A stretch of 64,000 nucleotides of DNA from Rhodosorus marinus CCMP1338 (taxonomy: Eukaryota; Plantae; Rhodophyta): assembly GCA_029953675.1 (NCBI GenBank), contig JAMWBK010000006.1, forward strand, positions 868,001 to 932,000, read 5' to 3'. How positions within the stretch are numbered: position 1 is the stretch's first letter; each line of letters starts with the position of its first letter. The position numbers and the translations under genes are program-made. Below the pieces are notes generated by a model. That model was not told the origin of the DNA and searched no databases. It saw nothing but the letters and a program-made list of their open reading frames with translations. Positions 48,879 to 64,000 of this stretch are shown piece by piece.

Positions 48879-50266
48879 TTAAACCATCGCCGCAGCAGCT
48901 TTGGCCTTTGACGACAAGCCTACAAGCTCAGTGCTGCTGGCAATCTCCTCTCTTGTAGAGCCAGTTGGGATGTCAGGAATGGAGTACCACTTGGTGGGTA
49001 CGGCCATGGCCGGTAGAATGCTCTGCGCATGGGCTCGAAGCCACTTGTCCGTAAGTCTCGCACCTGGGAGCCCGGAGCAATGTCGTTTAGCTGTTCTACA
49101 TGAAACAAAGGGGATATGAGGTTAATTGGTGGTTGCACATACCGGCCTTGGTTTGCACCGCCACGGCAATCTCCTGTCCAGAGTTTCCGTCTCCGACCGG
49201 GAAAGCAACTGCCTTCTCTACACTTGGGTGCATCGCCATAGTTTGCTCGACGTCAAACATATCCACCCGGACTCTCTTCTCAACGCTTTCAAGATTGGCA
49301 GGCACTTGAGCTTGGAACTCTCGAACAATTCTCTCCGATTGCGGTGGGACGAGGGTACCAGCGCCGTCCGCAACACTAGCGGCAAGGGTGGCCTGCGCAG
49401 CGACTGTGCTCGCTGCAGCGCCAGACTGTGACAAATGAGGAGATGAAACCTCAGACGTTTGCGCGCTTCCCTATTGTGCGAGTGAAGTCTCACCTGCAGA
49501 ACAAGCTTCGATGTATCGCCCAGGATTTCGCTGATTTGAGAAGTTTTCACAACCGCATCTTGCGCAGTATCGTTCGCTTCCGCAGCGGTAGCCGCAGTCA
49601 AAATGGCCGCGCCCTCAGTTTCCTCGAGTTGCAACTGTACCGGGGCAGGTTTGGGTGATTTCTCTGCGGCAACAGCGGTCTTGGCAAGGGCGTTTACTTC
49701 GCTCATCTGCCCAATCTCGGTGTCGAGCTGGTTTACGTGAGTAGCAAGCTCGTCAACTGAACGCTTATAGTCCCTCTGGAACTCTTGCTCGTACTTGGCC
49801 TGTTGCATCGCAACTTCATCCAGTTTCGCGCGGAGATCACCCCTGTGCTCTTGATCAAACTGCTGTTGCGCAGCCGACAGTTGGGTTAGCCTAAAAAGGT
49901 TCAGCCAAGCAAACGAAGGATTAGCTATTTTCTACGAGCACTCGCACTGGGAACAACGGCACGGGAGACGATTGCATACTGTGATATCTTTCGCCGGAAT
50001 TCAACTTCTGATTCTTCCATGAACTGCCGCTCTGCGTTCATTCGGTTCGCTCGGAGAACCACTTCGCGATTTACTCTCGTCAGTTCCTCGGCCTCTTTCT
50101 CCGCCACTCTACTGCGAGTCTCGTCCTTCAACGACTCGAGGATCAAGTCCCGCCTCTTCAGAACATCCTCCGAAATCACAGCAGGAGCTGCGGGGACCGC
50201 ATCTTCCACTATGCTAGTCCCGAGTCCGGATGTCGTCAGGTCCGCCGCTTCCATATCCTTCTGCAT
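48879..50266 (-). CDS. Coiled-coil plus AMP-binding C-terminal subdomain protein (partial paralogue of 51482-54662)
   Basis: Four exons with open frames and the same intron positions and phases as the last four exons of the upstream gene; MHPSVEKAVAFPV is shared. Stop TAA at 48879-48881. The 5' end is uncertain (first ATG 50266; short upstream exons are possible). Confidence 0.75.
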
Positions 50267-51481
50267 CGCTTCCAGGCGCGTACTGAGACGTTACAAATCC
50301 ATCGACAAATCTGTTAGCTCCGTTCCGAAAACGTTTTACTCCACTTCGGCCTCTGCACACTCACCCGCGTGTACTCAATCCCAAAAGTCCGTCCTAGTCT
50401 AACCCACGATGTCTACCTGGACTTCCTCCAAGTCTATCAAACCAAAAAAGAAATATAAGACAAACAGAAAGCTGGTTATGGTTCTTACTCGCTGGTTAAG
50501 ACAGCATTTGATGGTTCCTAGAGAAAACAACAACAAAATAACAGTCGTCTTAGGATCGCTTTCAAGATCCCTAAACGCAATTCCCTCCCCACCCCTTGCT
50601 CTCCTTCCCTCAAACAGAGTCTCCCTCAACCATTGCTCATCAACTGCCTCTCCAAAAAACCCACCCCATGACCGTTTCCATTAAAAACCCCAATAAAAGG
50701 CATAAAAAGCCACACCAAATTTTCATTCTTTTTTCCAGGGGGCATAGGAATTCATTGGTTTTTTCAGATTTTGTTTTTAAAAAAATCAAAGTCCCCGAGT
50801 TTTTACCTTTCAGCACCTTTTTCCAAAAATCATTCTCTGAATCCTGAAGGGGTGCTGATGGGACCATGTCGAAGGAGTTTGTATATTTTTTAGTAAAGTA
50901 TTCCCAAGATATCTGGAGTATTTAAATATGTTGGCGGTTGCTTTGTACCCCCTAGCCGCCGGAGAGTTTGAATTCGCTTCTTTGTGATTGGTCAGGATTT
51001 ATTGTAGTACGGTAGTAGCAATGTACTAATCTTCTGCCGCGGGGTTAAGTTTTGGTGTCCCAGCGAAGTGGCAAGAGTGGGATGTGGTTTCAGGCGCAGC
51101 GGTGCGAGGCCGAAAGCGGCCTGAAAGTTCGCACTTTACTTAGCCGCAGTGCATGCCCTTGAGCTTCCAAGAATCATCAGCGGTGCTGTGTGGCTTTCTC
51201 GCAGGTGAGCTTACTACAAAGGTCGGTGTTGTGTGGTGAGGAGCTTCTCGTCCTGAATATATGATATGTTTATTCCTCGTCCCTAGAGTCGCGAAACCGG
51301 AAAGAAGGAGATTAGCAACCAATGCTTCTGCCGCCCCTAATGTGCTGTCGTTCACCACGCCAGCGTCCAACCAGCCGGTATCTCAAAACTTTGCAGAGCA
51401 GCAAAGAATGCAAACAAAAAGGAAAGCAAAAATCTCATCTACTGTGGAAACACCCCGCGATTGCAGCCCCGAGCTCCGAAA

Positions 51482-54400
51482 TCAAACCGCCATCGCGGTC
51501 GCTTGCGCTGGTGCTGCAAATTCCACCAGCTCATTGCTGCTCGCGATATCTTCTCGGGTAGCTCCAACTGGAATCTCAGAAATTGAGTACCACTTCGAAG
51601 GGACTGCAATGGTCGGTAGAATACTCTGAGCATGGACCTTGAGCCATTTGTCAGTGACCCTCGCGCCTAAAAGCAACGAGAAGCGTCCATTAGCATGCTA
51701 CGTACAAAACCGAAAAGCCAGAGGTGGATGCAGCTGTTCTACGCAATATACACATACCGGGTTTGGTCTTCACAGCTACCGCAATCTCAGGGGCGGAACT
51801 CCCATCTGAGACAGGGAAAGCGACGGCCTTTTCTACACTTGGGTGCATCGCCATAGTTCTCTCGATATCAGCCATTTCCACCCGAACTCTCTTCTCAACG
51901 CTATCAAGACCAGTCGGAACTTGAGCTTGGAATTCCTGAACAATTCTCTCCGGTCTACTCGGGACTAGATAGCCAGCATCATGGGCTGCGTCAGCCGATT
52001 TGTTGGCAAGCACAGCAGCACTAGCCGCTGCAGCTCCAGCCTATGGCAAATCACACAAATAGCAGTTCAGCTATTGGAATTTTTTGATGAACGTGTGCTC
52101 CCCGCAACAATCTCACCCCAACCGCTAGTGTGCCTGCCTCTGCAAGCATGCCATTCGTCTTGGAAGTAGTTCCGACAGCATCCTTAGCATTTTGTTCCGC
52201 TTCTTTGGCTTGGGTTGCGGCAGATATTGCCGTGTTCTCAACGTCCTCTGTTTGAAGATGGACAATGGCAGGTTGCGATGACTTATCGCTGAGCATGGCC
52301 GTCTTCGCGAGGAAGATGACTTCGCTCAGCTGTCCAATTTCAGCATCAAGCTGGTTCAGCTCAGTAGCCAACTCGTCAACTGACCGCTTGTGATCGTTGT
52401 GGAACTCTTCCTGGTACTTGGCTTGCAATCTCGAAACCTCGCTAAGCTTTGCCAATAGATCACCCCGTGTCTCCTCATCGAATTGCTGCTGCGCCGCTGA
52501 CAAGGAGATAAGTCTGGGTAGTGACGAACATCGAAAATCCACAATGTCAGATTAGCACGCTCTCAAAGGATTTCAAAGACGCGAGACCGTCAGCTTTTGA
52601 GTGCGTACTGCGATATCTTCTTCCGGATGCCGACTTCTTTATCCTCCATGAATTCTCGCTCGGAATTCATTCGACCGGCTCGCAGATCTAGCTCGTGATT
52701 TGCTCGCCTCAAATCTTCCGCATCCTTCTCCGCAACCATGCGGCGAGACTCGTCCTTCAGAGACTCCAGAACCAACGCTTGCTTTCTGAGCATGTCTCCG
52801 GATACTAAGCCGGTGTACGCCTGATCCTCTCCTTCAAGGGCACTGGTCACAAGTGCGGAGGTTGTCAGGTCGGCACCTTCCAACTCCTTTCTCATGGCGT
52901 CGGATTCCTTCTGTGGGAAAGATGATGCCTGTTGGAACAATTTGCGAGCGTGGTGAAGCGTTATTGTTCAGCCAATTGTCATCGGCAAAGGTCAATATCT
53001 TTCTCTGAAACAGTTGGCAACATGCTCACGAAAATCGCAGCTCGCGCAGATGCTCCAGCCACTTCAGTCATCTTCCTTGACTCCAGGTCAAAGCTAGCCG
53101 CTCCGGCTGCAGACAGAACTGACGTCTGTGAGAGGAGATCGTAGGCCACCTTGAGATTACCCTCACTGTCTATTTGACCTCGATCGCCAGTTAGAAACCA
53201 GACTACCCCTGTGCATAGACAGCGACAGCGATTGGAGGACTTAGTTAGATACAGTCAACGTCCGACATTCTGTGAAAACTTTGGTACTCTACCTTCAGCG
53301 TCTGTGTAAAGCGCAGCTTCGTTCAAAGTAGACTGGCCGATGTAGCCAACCGGGGCTACCATTTCTCCAGCAACCGCAATGTCGCCCTCAACGTCAACTG
53401 GTGAGACCTCCTTATTATCGTCAAAAATACGGAGTTGGCAACCCGCTACCGGCTTCCCTTGGGTTCCAACAGCTTTATCTTCCTTCACAACTGCTGTAGC
53501 AATTCCTGATGCTTGGGCGGGACCATAAGCCTCAAGAATAGAGGTTTTCAGGACTTCTTCAAGCGTCTGCACCTCAGTCTTGATTGTACCTGAAAACCAT
53601 GACACAGGGGATTCCTGGTCAATTCATCTAGTCAAACCATTCAGCGATTGGGCAGAGGCCAGGGAGAAGACGAACCTGGGCAGCTTCGAACAAACTCAAG
53701 GGCGGACGCATCGCTTCCAACCTCTCTTGTGTAAGTACAGATCTTCATAACATCAACAGCCGGCACACAAAGGTAGTTCATGCCGTCCTGCTGAATCAGT
53801 TCGGGGAGTTTGGAAACCACGAACGATTCTCCCGGGGTAAGAATCAGGCATCCGCCACTGGACAAGGAACTCACGAGGTGGAGAAGCCCGTGGACAGAAT
53901 GGACCGGATGTGCCAGAAGTGTGCAGTTAGTCTGATCAAGATTATACGTGGTCGTGAAGGCTTTTGCGGCACTGCTAACGACGGTGTGCGATACAGGCAA
54001 AAGAGTCGGGATGCCTTGCGATCGCGAGGATATAATAGCCGCTGGTTCCGACGGATCTTTTGTTCCGGAAGCTGGAGTGGAAATCGTTCCATTCTGCGTG
54101 TCAAGTACCACCTCAGCGGCACCCACAGAGCTTTCTACAGTCCAGTGTATCAACGACATAGCCTGAGCAATTCGGGCACAAACTTCGGATTTCTACGAAA
54201 AATGCGATGAGGAAGAGAAAATCAGCATGGAAAACAGATCAAAGCGTGCCTTGTAGCATCAAGTACCGTCGATATCAACACATTGGCGCCAGCGCTCTGC
54301 GCAGAGGAAGCAATAGATTCTTCGCTCGCATCGGGATCGACAAACAGTGCGGTTCCGCCCAAACTCTGAAGTGCAGCGAAGCAAACTACAGCCTCGAGGC

Positions 54401-54662
54401 TGTTCGGCAGCGCAAGAGTAATAATCGAGCCTGCACCAACGCCTGCACTCTCCATCGCGTTGGAAACAGATGCTACATTACCTGCCAGGTCCGCATAGGA
54501 GACATCGAACTTCTCTCCATCGCCCCCCGTTGGATAAACCTTCAACGCAATCGCTGTCCCATACTGCAGATTGACAATCTCGTGCAGAGAAGTCAGCTCC
54601 GGCATCGTGGTCTTCGAGCCGAAGAGCTTCTGGGAGATCGAACCCAACCCGAATCGAGACAT
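51482..54662 (-). CDS. Degenerate ANL-family (AAE3/Pcs60 oxalyl-CoA-synthetase-like) protein with a coiled-coil insertion
   Basis: Eight exons. LPNSLE, SVHGLL, EFVRSC, ILEAYG, GKPVAG, WFLTGDRG, then ~330 helical residues, then DIERTMAMHPSVEKAVAFPV and VPSKWY. Confidence 0.8.
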
Positions 54663-55957
54663 GTCTTGTACTCTTTTTTCCTCTCAACGATATCCTCAGT
54701 GCTCCATTCCACCAACTACTCCCCTTCTTCAGTCCCCTTGGAACACCCCTCTACCCTTTCCAAACCCCAACCCCTTCCCCCCTCAGTAGCCTTTCATTGC
54801 TTTGCTGCGATGAAAAAAAAAAGGCAGACCTCCGAAAAACCCACTCCCTCACCAATCCATTCAGGCCGCCCAAAACAAAAAGAAAAACGTCTTCGAAAAA
54901 CTAGTCGCCTAATTCGCCGGAAAAGGAATAACTCGAAACAACAAGAACAACTACTCCTTACCCATAGCACCAAACACCCAATCCAACCGACAAAGCTTCA
55001 AATCCCTCTAAAATATAATGTAATTATCAATTTACATTGGCAAGAACCAAAATTATACCCCTTGTTGCCGAATTCCGTTTGTAATGCATCCATTCGAATT
55101 CGCTCTTTTCTGCCTTTGCGATTTTCATATTTAACGATAAGTATTAAAAAAGGTAAAATTTTCTAATCAGTCATTTTAAGAACTCATTTTGATTGGGAAA
55201 CGGGACAGTAACTGGACATCTTCATGATTAATACAAATAATTTTAACTTTTTCTTCAAGTTCTTTTTGAAACCTGAAAACTATCTTCCCTTTTTTTTGCG
55301 CGCTGCCCCTCAATCTGAGCTTTTGTCGTATTTCAATTAAAACAATTATGGACGACCTTGAGACTTTGAAGCGTTTTCCTGTCGAGCTCAGATCCTCGAT
55401 CGGGCTCCGTCTATTTCGGAGATATTTTCCCCGATTATTTTTCCCAAAAACTTTACAGTTCCTGAATATTCGTTTTTGGTACTCAATAATACGATATGGG
55501 TGCGTAAAGACGATTTCGCCTATTGTTCTTCGGAGGACTACACCGCAAAAATATGAAGAGCTCTGAAGAACATGAGATTGAATCATGTTTACTAAATTGC
55601 AGATGGTTTTCAGATTTAGACGATATGGGATATTTTGAGAAAATAGCCAGAACTAGGACTTGCAGCGGACCAGATTGCTTATGACGAAAACGCTATTCGC
55701 TTAATATAGCCAGTGGATGGCTGAGCTATGTTCTATCTAACGAATCAACAAGCATATAATATAATAGATGATCATGTTAATTCTGGATTGGACCAATTGA
55801 TCACTTCATAAGGAGATGTCCAATGAATTGCTTCGAGATTGATTTCAATCTCATTTTGGCGAAGTTCACATTTGGGAATGGTGGGCGGTGCTCAGGCATC
55901 TCCTTGAGGTGTGGATGGGAACGGGAAAGACTTGTGTGAGAGTCGATGAAGGTTTCG

Positions 55958-58900
55958 ATGCAAGCAATGGATTTACCTCGATATCCATGCTTTGTAGTCT
56001 CGGTATGTGTACCTCTTGATCTTTGCCGAACGCCAGAACAGTCATGTGGGAGGAACTCGGGGCTTCGATGGCTGTCCGCGAGGAGGGTACGAGCGCCTTC
56101 AGACACGCAGCACGTCAACGACATGGGCGATCATACCGCTCCCAAAAAGAGAAAGTCGTAAGTAGTTTGGTTCTTGTTGCGGCTCCGGTGACACCATCGG
56201 TTCTCGAGATCGCGGGATGCGCTGTGCTGACTTTTGGATCCCTCATCCGCTGACGAACAGATGGGAGCAAATGTTCGAAATTACTCAGAGAATAGTCTTG
56301 GATGGGCGAGATGTCACTCCAGATGACGGTGATGTATACCGGTGGTTGAAGCGTCAACTCTCGCTCTGCAAAAGAGGGAAGCTCTCTGCTGAGAAGACTG
56401 AGAAGTTGAAGAAGTTCGACGTCTCAGTGAGACGTAACCCCTCACAAGCGTACGCGGTTCAATCTTCGCGATCTCTTAATGATTCCGAGATTCAGGGCAA
56501 ATTCACTGAATCCTTCCCCGTGCTTCGTAATGCAAAGATTCATGCAAAGATGTCAAGAGTACAAAGAGAAAATTGCCAACGGAGCGGATAAGTACGGACC
56601 AATGCCATCAGCAACGCCTTTGGGGCAGTTCTGTCATCGGATGAGGAGCCTTCGGGATCGAGGAAAGCTCTCGGAAACGCAGATTCGTCTATTGGATGAA
56701 GTAGGCTTTGTCTGGAGCTCGAGCAGGTTTGAGACATGGTTAGAGATGTTCGAAAGTCTCAAACAGTACAAAGCTGAGCACGGGCACTTTCGCATCGATT
56801 CAAGGAACTATCCAGAGCTTGCGAGGTACACGCCAATCGCTAACGGTTGATTGTTTTAGCTATACCTGTGTTGATTAGCGATGCCTTCGTTTCAGGTGGG
56901 TGGCCCAGACGAGGTACCACAAACGAGTTGGGAAGTTATCGAAACGTACTTTCCAAATACTAAGCTCAATCAACTTTGATTGGGAGCATTCCGACTATGG
57001 TCAAACTTGGGAGGAGTCGTTTGCAGAGCTCCTAGAGCTGAACAGCAGAACGGTCCATGCAGCTGACTTCACTAACACGCACGCTAGGCTTGGTAGATGG
57101 TTGAGGACACAAAGAATTCTAGCTAGAAAAGGTGAGGATGGCTTCTGGCAAGATGCGCGCAAACTACGAAGCCACCCTTTTCTGAAGATAACCCCAATTC
57201 TGCAGGATTGCTAGATCCCGAGCGAGAAAAGCTCCTCGTTAAGAACGGTATCAATATTAGGAAAAAGAAAACCGAGAGCGCTCTGTGGGAAGAGCGATTC
57301 CAAGAGCTCATGGCGTGGAAAGAGAAACATGGCGAGCTGAAGGCCCATCCCGGGTGTGCAACCTCGAACCCGAAGGCACGTCGATACTGTTTTTGCTAAC
57401 GAGCTTACCGTTCTTGGCTTTATTAGGAATCTCGAAGATCATCTGCACCGATGGATGCAGAGACAAAGACTGTTCCGTGCTCAGCTGAGCGCGGATCAGG
57501 AGCGGCGCCTGGGGGAGATTGGCTTTGTATGGGATACAGAGGAGGCGTGGGAAGGCACATACGAAGAGCTCGCTGCGTTCTATCGAAATCATGGTCATGG
57601 AGACGTACCTACATCAGAACCACTGGGACTCTGGCTGACTGATCAGGTGAGCAGATAAACCTTGTCAGCGCGCTCGAATGCAAAACTTCTGATTCAGCTG
57701 TGAACACTCATGAACTGACGAAAGTCTCTATACACTCAGAGCATGTACTACCACTTCGGCCGGCTTTCTGAAGATCGTCAGGAAAAGCTGCGAGAGCTCG
57801 GGGTTGACCTGGACCATATGTGGTCCCAGCTGAAATGGAGGAAAATGTATGCGAAGCTGCATGCTCACTACAAGACTCACAAATCTTCGGATGTACCGGT
57901 TACTAAGGTATGGAGCTCCCTAGCAGTATATTCGACGACGGTCGTTCCAAAGTAGCAAATTCACGAGATGAGGAGACGGCGCATGGACAGCGTATAGGCA
58001 AACCGAGCCTTGCCCGTCTAGCACAGGAATCAGCTTGATGCTTGGATGTTTCCCGCCGCAAACATGGACCTGGGGGCTTGTCTAGTTTGTTCATCATTTG
58101 CTAGTCTTCAGAAGTTCTACTTTTGCAACTACCAAAAGAGAGCTGGTTTTGCTATGGCTAGGTATGAGGTGCCGGCGTTGACTGGGCTAACTCGCTTGCT
58201 CTATGCACTTTGATTCTTAACAGGGTGTTCTGGGAAAGTTCGTCGCTCAGCAGCGCTCCCTGTACAAAGCTGGAAGACTGTCAGAATCCCGGATACGATT
58301 GCTCGAGGAAGTGAACTTCACGTTCATTCTGGGAATGGAGAAGTGGAGACAGATGAATGAAAAGGTCAAGGAAGCTGGCATTCGGAATCTCAGCCGTAGC
58401 TTGCGCTTCTGGTTGGACAAGCAGCGATCAAAGCATCGAAGGGGACTCCTCGCTGAAGTAAGCTTCTTTTGTGCTCGCGAACTTTCCCCCGATGAGATCT
58501 ATTAACCCCGTTTGCTTTTGCATACTGAAGGTACAAGAGAACCTACTACATGAGCTGGGCGATTGGGATCCTGATCTTCCCTGGGAGACTGGCCTCAGAA
58601 TGCTTGCGGACTTCAAAAAACTCAAAGGTATCTACGACAGATAATTTTCAGGGAGACCGTGGTTTGTTGAAGCTTATGGACTCCCTTCTCACCCATCGGA
58701 CAACATGTTGACGTATCGCTTCGGATAAGGCCACTGCTATGTTGCCCTGGAGGACGAAGGTGAGCTCGCAATATGGCTAACACATATGAGATGGATGCAA
58801 CGCCGCGGTGAACTTCCCGCGGATAAAGAATCCGCTCTGGCTTTACTTGGCGTGGTTTTCGACGTGGGCGAAGCAAGCTACTTGTCGAGGTTCCATCTGC

Positions 58901-59217
58901 TGAAAGAATATTTAGAAATCGCGGGCCCAGACGCAAGTCCCCCACAGCACATCACGGATGCCAACTTCAAGTATTGCAAACTCTGGTCCTTTGTGTGGGG
59001 ACAGCGGGATCTGTACAAGAGAGGCAAACTTCAACCTGAACGGGAGGCTGCACTCAGGGACATTGGTCTGAGGCTGGAGACGAAGTCCGAGAGGTCAGTC
59101 AACGTCGAGATGACCAAAGCCGAATCCGTCTTTGATATTTCAGAGAGCCCATTGAGCGTCGAGAGCTTCGTACCCGAAATGGACCCAACCGAGGTTCCCC
59201 TGATCGATTCTAGGTGA
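55958..59217 (+). CDS. Helicase-associated (HA) domain repeat protein without a helicase domain
   Basis: Multi-exon. About 9-10 repeats of W...F..L..Y...HG...VP......LG.W...QR......G.L...R...L..IGF.W. The start is uncertain; the N-terminus contains GLRWLSARRVR. Confidence 0.8.
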
Positions 59218-60277: not shown

Positions 60278-63200
60278 ATGCGCACGGCAGTGCCTCCCGG
60301 GGCTGTATCTCAGATAATCCCGTGCAACCTGATTCCTTCGCTATCAGGAGATGAAGGAAAGCGACAGGCGAGTTTTGCACAGACTTGCCTTGGATGTCAA
60401 CTCGGAACTTCCACTGAAACGATACTTTTGTGTAAATCATCAGGCCGTACTGCTGAAGGAAACATGGCTGGAGATCCTCAGTGTGTCAGAATCTGGAGGC
60501 GTACCGCAACTGGTCTCTAGACAGCCTGTACACGGCATAGCAAGAGGATGCGCAACACTGCGGACTGGAGTAAATGACATCGACATCCTGGTGCTGACGT
60601 CGGATTCTGGAGAGCTGACCTTCCTAGGATTCGACGTCAAATCATTCCTTTTCAGACAAATCGATAGCGTGAAGATTGACAAGCCTGGTTTCGCACCTGA
60701 GGCTTTGGGCCAAAGCGTTGTTTCTGATCCGCAGAACGGCTTAATCGCGGTAGGAGAAGTTTTAAAGCGGCGTCTTTGAGCAGGAACTCGAAGCGACCTT
60801 AGGCGTCCGCTCTCGGAGGAGATTGCTCTATTCTCTTTAAGCTTCTTAGCTTCCCGCTGCAGGCGTCTAACCGAGATCGTACTTGTCGTCTTGTCGTGCA
60901 GGTTTCAGCGATGGAGGACGCGATCCAAATCTTCCGTGCTTCCCTGGACGAGAGCTCTCCGACCTTCACTGAGATGGATTCATTACATCTTGATGCAGTC
61001 ATCGTCTCGCAAACTTTTCTCCCCGGCGTTGCTCTTGTGGTTCTGACGAGCTCTCGCTATGGAAACGAAGTACACATATTTCCAGAGGCCGACGGTGAAG
61101 TTTCTCTTGTGTACGTACGCCTTTAAATACCTACGTCCGTGAGGGCCGGATCTCGCAGAGGTCTTAATGCCCAAGGAAGCTTCTAATGGTCATTCATGAC
61201 TTTTTCTGAATCCTCAGACCAGTAGTAGCATCAGCCAGACAACTGCTTGATCTTGGAGCTAGTGACCTCGCCCCTAATATGGGTGAGGTAATGGCTGTTC
61301 CAGGCTCAGAAACTATTTTTGCTCTCGTCTACGGCTCAAAAGTTGCCTTCTTCGATATTGGGTGCGCGCTTCACCCCATCAGTGTGTCGCCCTTCCAAGT
61401 TCTATGCTTGGTAGATATTGCGAGTACCGTGACTAACAACTGCATTCGCTACCTCCATCGAAAGCAGAAAAAACTTGCAGCCCGGTCCGGGAAGTTTCGA
61501 TCTACTGAACAGAATTGGACTGTATGATATGATTGACGTGGTGAATATAGGTGAATGCTTAATAGTCGCTGCTACGTGGTGGGAGTATCAAGGACCGAGC
61601 TATACGAGCACAACGGTAAGAAACAGACACCCATAATCTGTCCAGGACCACGCCAAATTCACAATGAACCGTTCGGGAGAGGACTGCACGAGGCTGAGCC
61701 CAGGATCCCTGCTCAGCACACATCGTGAAATTTAGCCACCTTCTGATAGTCGTTGCCACTGCCAAGGTTCCGGCCTTTCAGTTGATGCACTGTCCATCAC
61801 CCCAGGGTGTTTGGACCTTGGTCCTTGAACAAAAAAGTTTGGTGGCTGCAATTTCTCATGTGTAACCGCAAACTGAGCTCACGAACCAACCTCTGCCTTA
61901 GGCTATGCTTGTGAGTCTGGAGAACGGGGATCTGAAGATGATCACTGATGAGATTATACACCTCGGCAACTTTGGGCCGTGCATTGACATAGCAACTCTC
62001 GTGAACGAGCATCTTGTAATGTGTGGTGATGGGTGCGATGGCGGAGTTCGCCGGGTAAGGCGTCAGTCAGTATCCTAGCTTTTGCAGTTAATTGTTTAGT
62101 CTACTTGGTGATGTTGAGCTGAACTTTCCGAGGCGTGTTGTGGACAACGTTTGTCAGATGACAGTTGACACTGACTTTAAAGTCAATCTCAAGCTACAGC
62201 TCGTGCTGGAAAACTTCTCACCAGTCTCAAGCTTCGACTACGACCCGAATGAACAGGAGCTCTTCGTGTGTTCTGGAATAGGCAAGAGCGGCACACTACG
62301 CCGACTTCAACTCAGCGTCCCGATACATACACTGAGCAGAACTGAATCAATATTTGTGGGTTGCAATCGAATTTGGTCTCTGAAAACCAAGACCAGCGAC
62401 CGTCACCACTCCTTTCTCGTGATTTCATACATTGACTCAACAACAAGTGTGCTGGCCGTGGACCAAAGCGGAAACCACTTGACCGACAACACCGCTGAGC
62501 ATGGATTGCTGCTCCAGCAAGCAACAATCGCAGTCGGTCTGCTTGTTGAAAACGTACCGGCACAGGTCCATTCTGAAGGGATACGAATTGGCCACCTTTC
62601 AGACAAACCTGGAATCGCCCCGAAAACAGCCGATTGGGTGTTCCCGAGTGGAACAAAGGTCAATGCTGCTGTGGTGGTGGAAGCGTAAGTTCATCACTCT
62701 AGCTGGTCACGTCGCAAGCAGCCTCCTGAGCCGTTGACCCAATTTCGTTACGCTCCTATTCAAAACCTCAGAGCGATCTACGTGGCCTACATAGCAGCGG
62801 ATAAAGGTCCACAGATTACTCGGTTTGAACTCAGCGATGGTGCTCTTATTGAGAGCTGTACTCAACGCCTCAAACATGAAGTTTCGTGCATGGAGCCATT
62901 CCCTGAGAAGTCAGCACTAGTCCTCGGAACGAGGTTACCATCTCTGGAAATAAGGGACGTGGTTCGGTTGGAGATGCTCCGCGAGTACCCTTTGAGTGAT
63001 TGGAACCTTCTGCCGCAGCTCCCTCGCCAGAAGGATCCGGCGATCCTGAAGCAACTGAAGCCAACGCAGCGCGCACCTGTAAGTGACGATGTCTGGGAGA
63101 TTGTTAACCCACAAGTGAACCTCCTATTTGTCTATTCTGATCCCCCGTTTGTCCATCGCGTTGCTAGGGTATTCCTGAATCCGTGTGCGTCCACGTTGAC

Positions 63201-64000
63201 GAGGCAGGCCCCACTGTAGTTGCCAGCCTACGTGGCGGCATGTTAATCACATGGACTATCAGAGATGGATTCACACTCGAGCACAAGCAGACGAAGTTTA
63301 TAGACTTTTCTTCTGGACAGGTAGGATCTTCACAACGAAGTTGAGGGCATCTCGATCTTCCACTGACAGTAGCTAATACCTGGGTCTCTGTCGGCTGCTC
63401 TTTACAAAGCTCATTCATGCGCGCTTAGAATCGTCGCCAGCACTGATTTTGCTTTCGGAGCGCCTCTGGCTTGTCCGGTTCAGGGACGGTCGTATCTCAT
63501 GTGACCCGACGTCGTTGAAGGAGGTAGGTGTTGTCTCCACGCTCTGTACCTGGCCTTGCTCAAGGAGAGCTGCGCCTACCCTTTATGTACTGTTTGACGA
63601 GCAACTAGTCTCGCTCGATAGTTGAACTCGACAGCTGGCGACTTGCATGTTACACGATTAAGGCTGACTTCGTTGCGCTTGCTCAAATCCTGGCCCTTCT
63701 TCCCAACCTTTCAGGCGGACGCCGTAGTACCGTTTAGCTTGGCGGAGCTTGGCAGCTGCCTTATCGTAATATCGAAGGGAGCCTTGTTGATAACGAAGCC
63801 AAGGCGGACGTTGGTTTGTACAAAGAAGATCCTCTTGCGTGCAACTCCTCGACGGGTCCTACTCGAACGCGGACCGGATGGCAGAAAGTGCGAGAAAGAA
63901 AGCAAAGTTGGCTCTAAAGTTTTTGGCTTTCTAGCGGCAGGGTGAAAAGCCTTATCCTTCCCTGTTTTCTCTAATCGAGCGAACAGGATCTTCGTTGTTG
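60278..64000 (+). CDS. DDB1/RSE1(SF3B3)/CPSF1-family beta-propeller protein, 3'-partial
   Basis: Multi-exon. KETWLEIL, QPVHG, DILVLTSDSGELTFL, GQSVVSDP..LIAVSAMED, ENFSPV..FD, LFVCSGIGKSGTLRRL, RIWSL, SFLVISY...T.VL, TIAVG...QVHSEGIR. Runs off the window. Confidence 0.82.

Follow-up and report, generated by a model that had tools for sequence, protein, structure and literature searches.

Within a 64,000-nucleotide stretch of the genome of the red alga Rhodosorus marinus CCMP1338 (contig JAMWBK010000006.1 of assembly GCA_029953675.1, positions 868,001 to 932,000; hereafter the window), the gene NDN08_000552 is functional and expressed, and its product belongs to a hitherto undescribed protein family of red algae, descended from AAE3/Pcs60-type oxalyl-CoA synthetases. 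Judging from its sequence, the protein is probably a pseudoenzyme derived from AAE3 that carries a helical stalk and acts as an adaptor or scaffold. More tentatively, the family as a whole may be a set of AAE3-derived ANL pseudoenzymes spread over several red-algal classes, in which a coiled-coil stalk would replace the hinge and which would play a non-enzymatic structural or adaptor role, with a separate "stalk plus C-subdomain" partner in Rhodosorus. In databases, NDN08_000552 has so far been labelled either as a hypothetical or as an "AMP-dependent synthetase/ligase domain-containing" protein, and neither ANL pseudoenzymes nor any red-algal family of AMP-binding coiled-coil proteins turned up in our literature searches.

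At the level of the fold, NDN08_000552 is a member of the ANL superfamily. Pfam AMP-binding (PF00501) matches amino acids (aa) 43-384 with E=5e-35 (121 bits, cut-off 29.9 bits), and AMP-binding_C (PF13193) matches aa 761-829 with E=1.4e-3, its 19.9 bits lying under the 24.5-bit cut-off; the latter domain is matched at E<=0.01 by 19 of the 23 family sequences that were aligned. The closest solved structures are the oxalate-CoA ligase AAE3 (5ie0, E=5.7e-31) and the Lathyrus oxalyl-CoA synthetase (OCS; 6qjz), followed by yeast Pcs60 (8aff). Alignments with AAE3-type structures fall into separate blocks, aa 51-424 for the N-domain and aa 756-832 for the C-subdomain. The same three proteins came out on top when the AlphaFold2 (AF2) model was compared with the PDB using Foldseek, only the N-domain being aligned (5ie0, E=9e-32, target-normalised template-modelling score 0.70). 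An earlier reading of this DNA, made from its letters alone (the sequence-only reading), had described a motif-by-motif likeness to AAE3/Pcs60, and both the sequence and the structure comparisons bear it out. All 25 best NCBIfam matches, headed by the FadD7 family, stop at aa 422-425. In the AF2 model, the predicted local distance difference test (pLDDT) is mostly 85-94 over the N-domain (approximately aa 30-424) and 88-93 over the C-subdomain (aa 758-845). This confident predicted fold, together with the AAE3 alignment over the C-subdomain, agrees with the intact-looking C-terminal subdomain noted earlier.

The roles of motifs A3, A5, A8 and A10 in ANL enzymes are established. The A3 P-loop and the A10 lysine are required for adenylation, the A5 threonine contacts phosphate while the A5 glutamate binds Mg2+, the A7 aspartate binds ribose and the A8 hairpin serves the thioester conformation. 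Out of five sequence motifs tested as marks of a competent adenylate-forming enzyme, four fail in NDN08_000552 (A3, A5, A8 and A10) and A7 passes. Motif A3 reads IISSRSQGIPT (aa 185-195) where the canonical sequence is LHTSGTTSRPKG, and it does not fit the P-loop consensus [ST][ST]G[ST][ST]GxPKG. Motif A5 reads YGPAQ (aa 326-330) in place of YAMTE, in all three strains, with loss of both the threonine and the glutamate. The A8 GRxK(D/E) hinge and its glycine-rich hairpin are absent, the ANL alignments ending at aa 424 and the next residues reading AYDLLSQTS. Motif A10 reads IPVGATRE (aa 828-835) instead of LPKTASGK, and its lysine is lost. Residue-level alignments thereby confirmed all four of the motif readings first made from the DNA. 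Motif A7 is kept (WFLTGD, aa 407-412), including the ribose-binding aspartate, and A6 (GDIAVAGEMVAPVGY) and A9 are retained as well. Because the roles of the four lost motifs are established, we infer that NDN08_000552 does not adenylate, and a classification as oxalyl-CoA synthetase would, on this reading of its motifs, be inappropriate.

At the hinge, 333 residues lie between aa 424 and aa 758, matching the insert of about 330 residues reported from the sequence. The insert is composed of 16% Ala, 10% Leu, 10% Glu, 9% Ser and 5.7% each of Lys and Arg, with a net charge of about -18. Its initial description as rich in Ala, Glu, Lys and Arg is right for the first two residues and not for the last two; Ala/Leu/Glu/Ser-rich fits better. 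Pfam matched no domain in the insert of NDN08_000552 or of any aligned family member, and matches to XLF_CC and ArlX (E>0.1) were dismissed as noise. A profile of the insert core found no significant relative in the PDB, the best matches being coiled-coil peptides of the GCN4-pIQI type (E about 0.08).

The AF2 model, which was run with the 23-sequence family alignment (mean pLDDT 74.6), predicts two long helices of 137 and 68 residues in the insert. Its pLDDT is below 50 at aa 427-510, 67-82 in helix 1, low in the break at aa 646-658, about 67-74 in helix 2 and low again in the linker. A heptad score computed on the single sequence gave no distinction between insert and globular domain, and periodicity in the family profile was used instead; helix 2 displays a strong hydrophobic period of 3.5 residues (power 17). 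The family-conserved core of the insert, approximately aa 577-726, consists of a block reading 'ILARLxxIExNQxxLEEE...H..E', a proline-containing turn and an alanine-rich helix reading 'AAxxAExSxxxT..A..AA'. Since helix 2 roughly equals in length the conserved C-terminal half of helix 1, the predicted helices would fit an antiparallel hairpin. An Ala/Gly-rich stretch at aa 696-714, AGTLAVGAGAAAASAAVLA (about 52137-52004, across intron 6), has a mean Kyte-Doolittle hydropathy of 1.65 and scores as a borderline membrane helix. A transmembrane reading of this stretch was dropped, as it is Ala/Gly-based, lies within a continuous predicted helix and is charged in other members.

NDN08_000552 is a real, expressed gene. 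It lies on the minus strand at 54662..51482, from the ATG at 54662 to the end of the stop codon at 51482, and is made of eight exons and seven introns, all of which are GT..AG introns of 74-101 nucleotides (nt). The spliced product of 857 aa is 100% identical to the NCBI entry "hypothetical protein NDN08_000552 [Rhodosorus marinus]". This identity places the window in the nuclear genome of R. marinus, a unicellular red alga. The gene models of the Rhodosorus marinus assembly (PMC10250338) were made with BRAKER and RNA-seq hints. Transcript evidence came from contigs L001 and L005, which belong to two other R. marinus strains and share approximately 90% nucleotide identity with the gene. In L001 (1938 nt), introns 1-4 are removed as modelled and intron 5 is retained, the contig ending 32 nt inside exon 6. 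In L005 (3096 nt), introns 1, 4, 5, 6 and 7 are removed and introns 2 and 3 are retained. Between them, the two contigs show the modelled splicing of all seven introns, and the eight-exon model drawn from the sequence yields the annotated protein. The sequence-only reading had raised the prospect of transcripts from which the helical exons are spliced out; none was seen among the contigs examined, and these exons are present in both L001 and L005. A 933-aa EukProt entry (P0190, from MMETSP0315) spans the whole protein; owing to an assembly artefact, it reads through intron 3 and carries the end of exon 3 twice.

Every transcript contig of NDN08_000552 at hand (L001, L005 and P0190, all from other strains) retains at least one intron, and retention of intron 5 would yield a truncated product of 584 aa. 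This pattern may stem from introns that are spliced slowly, from regulated retention or from pre-mRNA that entered the assemblies. Joint skipping of exons 5 and 6 (52928-52117; 717 nt, 239 codons) would be in frame and would delete most of the helical insert; it was seen in no transcript.

A full HMMER scan for the family covered 1.84 billion representative proteins. Besides nonribosomal peptide synthetase (NRPS) megasynthases, it yielded at least 17 clusters, with lengths of 838-1315 aa, whose matches extend over N-domain, insert and C-domain alike, and the uniqueness implied for this architecture by the sequence-only reading was therefore mistaken. A word-index search with the insert region (aa 425-760) gave no match outside Rhodosorus, the family surfacing only in the full scan. 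Named members are P0009 of Compsopogon caeruleus, a complete open reading frame (ORF) of 846 aa whose alignment covers residues 6-844 of NDN08_000552, P0014 and P0157 of Porphyridium aerugineum, and P0187 of R. marinus. The latter, encoded outside the window, is a second R. marinus paralogue; it is 1226 aa long, of which about 700 aa make up its insert, retains the A5 glutamate and probably represents the slower-evolving form of the family in R. marinus. Further members were found in unannotated NCBI assemblies, an ENA metagenome contig and Logan assemblies. The architecture is present in at least three red-algal classes. In contigs L002, L004 and L006 the family gene is a single uninterrupted ORF, which excludes a splicing artefact as the source of the architecture. 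Based on the GC content of L006 (66%; 82% at third codon positions), the intronless ORFs and the tree position, the unplaced members may originate from Bangiales or Florideophyceae. In both L002 (2189-6953) and L004 (10001-16320), the intronless member sits 1.7-3.5 kb upstream of a ribosomal protein L14e gene, a synteny conserved between these two species; no such gene occurs in the 64-kb Rhodosorus window. L004 also carries a canonical gene with AMP-binding and AMP-binding_C domains about 10 kb upstream.

P0009, a slower-evolving member, matches oxalyl-CoA synthetases with E-values of 7.5e-58 to 1.3e-42, far more strongly than the next ANL class (6e-21), and the family consequently derives from the AAE3/Pcs60 clade. 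In a maximum-likelihood tree with two canonical ANL proteins as outgroup, the family is monophyletic (support 100/99). NDN08_000552 groups weakly with P0187 (86/83), and its terminal branch of 2.52 is roughly three times the median of 0.85. The A3 loop and the A10 lysine are missing in every full-length member aligned, the A10 loop being shortened, and at most a 'GxSR' relic of A8 is found in the other members. In the rest of the family A5 reads YG[PT]PE; its threonine has become proline in most members, and its glutamate is kept everywhere but in this Rhodosorus lineage. The structural motifs A1/A2, A4 (partly), A6, A7 and A9 are kept by the family. Three family features are lacking in NDN08_000552, namely the A5 glutamate, an 'AAWxGGxxD' block before A3 and a C-terminal '[VI]K[SA]PxW' tail, which is found in most members. 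Because the A3 and A10 lysine losses occur in all full-length members aligned, the "dead" state, as read from these motifs, is ancestral to the family, and NDN08_000552 is an extra-derived, fast-evolving member.

Selection was assessed from Nei-Gojobori estimates of non-synonymous (dN) and synonymous (dS) substitution between the window gene and either L001 (570 codons) or an orthologue rebuilt from L005 (857 codons). Against L001, dS is 0.30 and dN 0.035 (dN/dS 0.117), with an equal ratio in the ANL part and the insert part; dS ranges from 0.26 to 0.30 across both comparisons. Against L005, dN/dS is 0.156 over all codons, with 0.152 in the N-domain, 0.155 in the insert (aa 425-757) and 0.150 in the C-subdomain. 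Within the insert, the ratio is 0.062 for the segment at aa 425-508, 0.209 for helix 1 and 0.132 for helix 2. The deficit of non-synonymous changes is highly significant, far beyond chance. Neutral decay, which had been named as a possible objection to the original reading, is excluded by this purifying selection (dN/dS 0.12-0.16), and the insert is constrained as strongly as the folded domains.

These data also bear on the possibility that the locus is an annotation artefact, that is, two unrelated genes fused by a wrong splice model, or a neutrally drifting pseudogene. The introns retained in the contigs (intron 5 in L001, introns 2-3 in L005) and the stand-alone gene for the C-terminal half that lies next door would be compatible with such an origin. 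However, transcript contigs cross every exon junction, homologues of the same architecture are uninterrupted ORFs in other species, and the low dN/dS comes with frames that are intact wherever they are covered (an ungapped 857-codon orthologue in the L005 strain, aa 1-570 in the L001 strain). We consider this explanation largely refuted and very improbable.

We propose that the ANL head of NDN08_000552 no longer makes an acyl-adenylate and that the protein would function as a pseudoenzyme. The head would be a folded binding module, possibly holding an adenosine-type or carboxylate ligand via the A7 aspartate and the pocket. The helical insert would form a stalk, perhaps an antiparallel hairpin of about 100 Å that returns the C-subdomain near the head, and this stalk would mediate self-association or partner binding, making the whole protein an adaptor or scaffold. 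The filament or tether that the sequence-only reading also suggested is a conjecture, as is its ligand sensor.

NDN08_000552 could alternatively still be an enzyme, one that catalyses a non-canonical reaction by using a pre-formed adenylate, by performing only the thioester/transfer half-reaction or by holding ATP with other residues, with the insert serving regulation or localisation. The conservation of the A7 TGD, of A6, of A4 (partly) and, in most members, of the A5 glutamate would be consistent with this, and the strong selection on the N-domain (dN/dS 0.15) is expected if the pocket is still used. Yet no aligned full-length member has the P-loop or the A10 lysine, both needed for adenylation in ANL enzymes, and the A8 glycine-rich hairpin is gone. 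NDN08_000552 has additionally lost the Mg-binding glutamate, and it scores only 148.6 bits with the FadD7-family equivalog of NCBIfam, whose cut-off is 650 bits. An enzymatic role thus seems unlikely. Equally doubtful is a role as a ligand-regulated sensor, which overlaps with the proposed adaptor: the dead head would bind oxalate or another dicarboxylate, or else an adenosine nucleotide, and a signal would reach partners through the resulting change in how the stalk and C-subdomain are arranged. The ribose-binding A7 aspartate, the pocket architecture preserved in the AF2 model and the descent from oxalyl-CoA synthetases speak for such a sensor, while the divergence of NDN08_000552 at many family-conserved positions, seen in its long branch, speaks against it.

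Several points weigh against the reading of NDN08_000552 as a stalked pseudoenzyme adaptor. The A5 glutamate and the A7 aspartate are kept in most family members, so that nucleotide binding or a non-canonical reaction may be possible, and the loss of catalysis in the family is read from motifs. Given its long branch and the absence of the conserved C-terminal tail, NDN08_000552 may also differ in function from the other members. As for the stalk, helix 1 displays just a weak 3.6-residue period in the family profile, and the arrangement of head, stalk and C-subdomain is predicted with low confidence (predicted template-modelling score, pTM, 0.52 for NDN08_000552 and 0.31 for its neighbouring paralogue). 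The "coiled coil" label that the sequence-only reading gave to the insert is accordingly partly supported: the long predicted helices and the heptad period of helix 2 favour it, whereas the insert is not one continuous coil, its aa 427-510 are of low confidence and the periodicity of helix 1 is weak.

Among known systems, AAE3/Pcs60/FadD7-type oxalyl-CoA synthetases are the best match for both the N-domain and the C-subdomain, the order of A1-A10 being traceable and A6, A7 and A9 being kept. Unlike them, NDN08_000552 lacks the A3 P-loop, the A5 Thr-Glu pair, the A8 hinge and hairpin, the A10 lysine and a C-terminus resembling a type 1 peroxisomal targeting signal (PTS1), and 333 aa replace the short hinge. 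It is also larger, with 857 aa (838-1315 aa in the family) compared to approximately 510-545 aa for solved oxalyl-CoA synthetases. The interrupted adenylation (A) domains of NRPSs remain active and harbour an embedded catalytic domain such as a methyltransferase, in most cases between A8 and A9 or between A2 and A3. As in these proteins, a large insertion within or close to the C-terminal subdomain divides the ANL fold of NDN08_000552 into two parts that each fold, but the insert lies between A7 and the A8 remnant, contains no Pfam domain in any member and interrupts a host without catalytic motifs. Fatty acyl-AMP ligases (FAALs) and DIP2 FAAL-like domains are likewise ANL proteins whose fold has taken on a different job through an insertion that modifies or prevents domain alternation. 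The FAAL insertion measures about 20 residues and lies in the N-domain of enzymes that still adenylate and whose A3 and A10 are intact, whereas NDN08_000552 lacks adenylation motifs and its insertion of more than 300 residues is at the hinge. With the red-algal homologues (P0009, P0014/P0157 and P0187), NDN08_000552 has in common the order of its domains, the loss of A3 and A10 and the blocks conserved within the insert.

Catalysis in ANL enzymes is a textbook example of domains that alternate around a short hinge. The surprise here would be a family-wide, selected loss of catalysis, as inferred from motifs, combined with replacement of that hinge. If confirmed, this would show that the ANL fold, like those of kinases and proteases, can be put to use as a pseudoenzyme, and these proteins would be, as far as we found, the first pseudoenzyme family and the first hinge-insertion architecture described in the ANL superfamily. 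They would also offer a new family for study in red algae, whose lineage-specific cell biology is poorly known. Such genes should not be annotated as "AMP-dependent synthetase/ligase", nor counted as oxalate- or acyl-activating enzymes in metabolic reconstructions.

Table 1. Exons and protein regions of NDN08_000552, and its neighbour NDN08_000551 (positions are those of the window)
Feature	Position	Strand	Residues	Remarks
Exon 1	54267..54662	-	aa 1-132	ATG at 54662; junction to exon 2 backed by contigs L001 and L005
Exon 2	53676..54192	-	aa 133-304	Degenerate A3 remnant IISSRSQGIPT at 54036-54004; intron 2 spliced in L001, retained in L005
Exon 3	53293..53589	-	aa 305-403	A5 YGPAQ at 53527-53513; A6 GDIAVAGEMVAPVGY; intron 3 spliced in L001
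Exon 4	53030..53208	-	aa 404-463	A7 TGD at 53191-53183; end of N-domain (aa 424 = 53149-53147); start of insert; intron 4 spliced in L001 and L005
Exon 5	52609..52928	-	aa 464-570	Insert; intron 5 retained in L001, spliced in L005, P0006 and P0190
Exon 6	52117..52513	-	aa 571-702	Insert: conserved part of helix 1, Pro-containing turn, helix 2
Exon 7	51758..52040	-	aa 703-796	End of helix 2, linker, first half of C-subdomain
Exon 8	51482..51666	-	aa 797-857	Stop codon included; degenerate A10 remnant IPVGATRE at 51574-51551
ANL large (N-terminal) domain	53147..54536	-	aa 43-424	Broken by introns 1-3
Insert at A7/A8 hinge	51876..53146	-	aa 425-757	333 aa; broken by introns 4-6
Helix 1	52793-52288	-	aa 509-645	AF2 prediction, 137 residues
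Turn			aa 646-658	Between helices 1 and 2
Helix 2	52248-51969	-	aa 659-726	AF2 prediction, 68 residues
Linker			aa 727-757	Helix 2 to C-subdomain
ANL small (C-terminal) subdomain	51521..51875	-	aa 758-845	Broken by intron 7
NDN08_000551 (P0174)	48882..50703	-	411 aa as annotated	Partial tandem duplicate directly downstream of NDN08_000552, same strand

The neighbour NDN08_000551 is homologous only to aa ~474-857 of NDN08_000552, that is, to the helical region and the C-subdomain, with approximately 60% identity (62% for the transcript ORF P0007) according to tblastn and peptide mapping. Its exon pattern is that of exons 5-8 of NDN08_000552, and no remnant of an N-domain was found between the two genes. 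NDN08_000551 is expressed, a complete ORF of 382 aa (P0007) being present in MMETSP data. Since this expressed gene holds nothing else, a "stalk plus C-subdomain" protein can be encoded separately. AMP-binding_C is matched above the cut-off (E=6e-6), and the C-subdomain superposes on AAE3 5ie0 with a root-mean-square deviation of 1.4 Å in Foldseek. AF2 predicts helices of 139 aa (pLDDT about 90) and 69 aa and a confident C-subdomain, for an overall pTM of 0.31. NDN08_000551 may pair with full-length NDN08_000552 through their homologous helices. The first two small annotated exons of NDN08_000551 (50703-50665 and about 50393-50364) are unsupported by P0007.

Elsewhere in the window, ORF fragments on the plus strand at 58786-59217 and 60351-63219 match a helicase-associated (HA) domain and the first and second beta-propellers of RSE1/DDB1/CPSF1-type proteins, and belong to unrelated neighbour genes. 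Also on the plus strand, a 319-aa ORF at 54207-55166 runs antisense to exon 1 and the promoter region of NDN08_000552; it is basic and of low complexity, and is most likely spurious.

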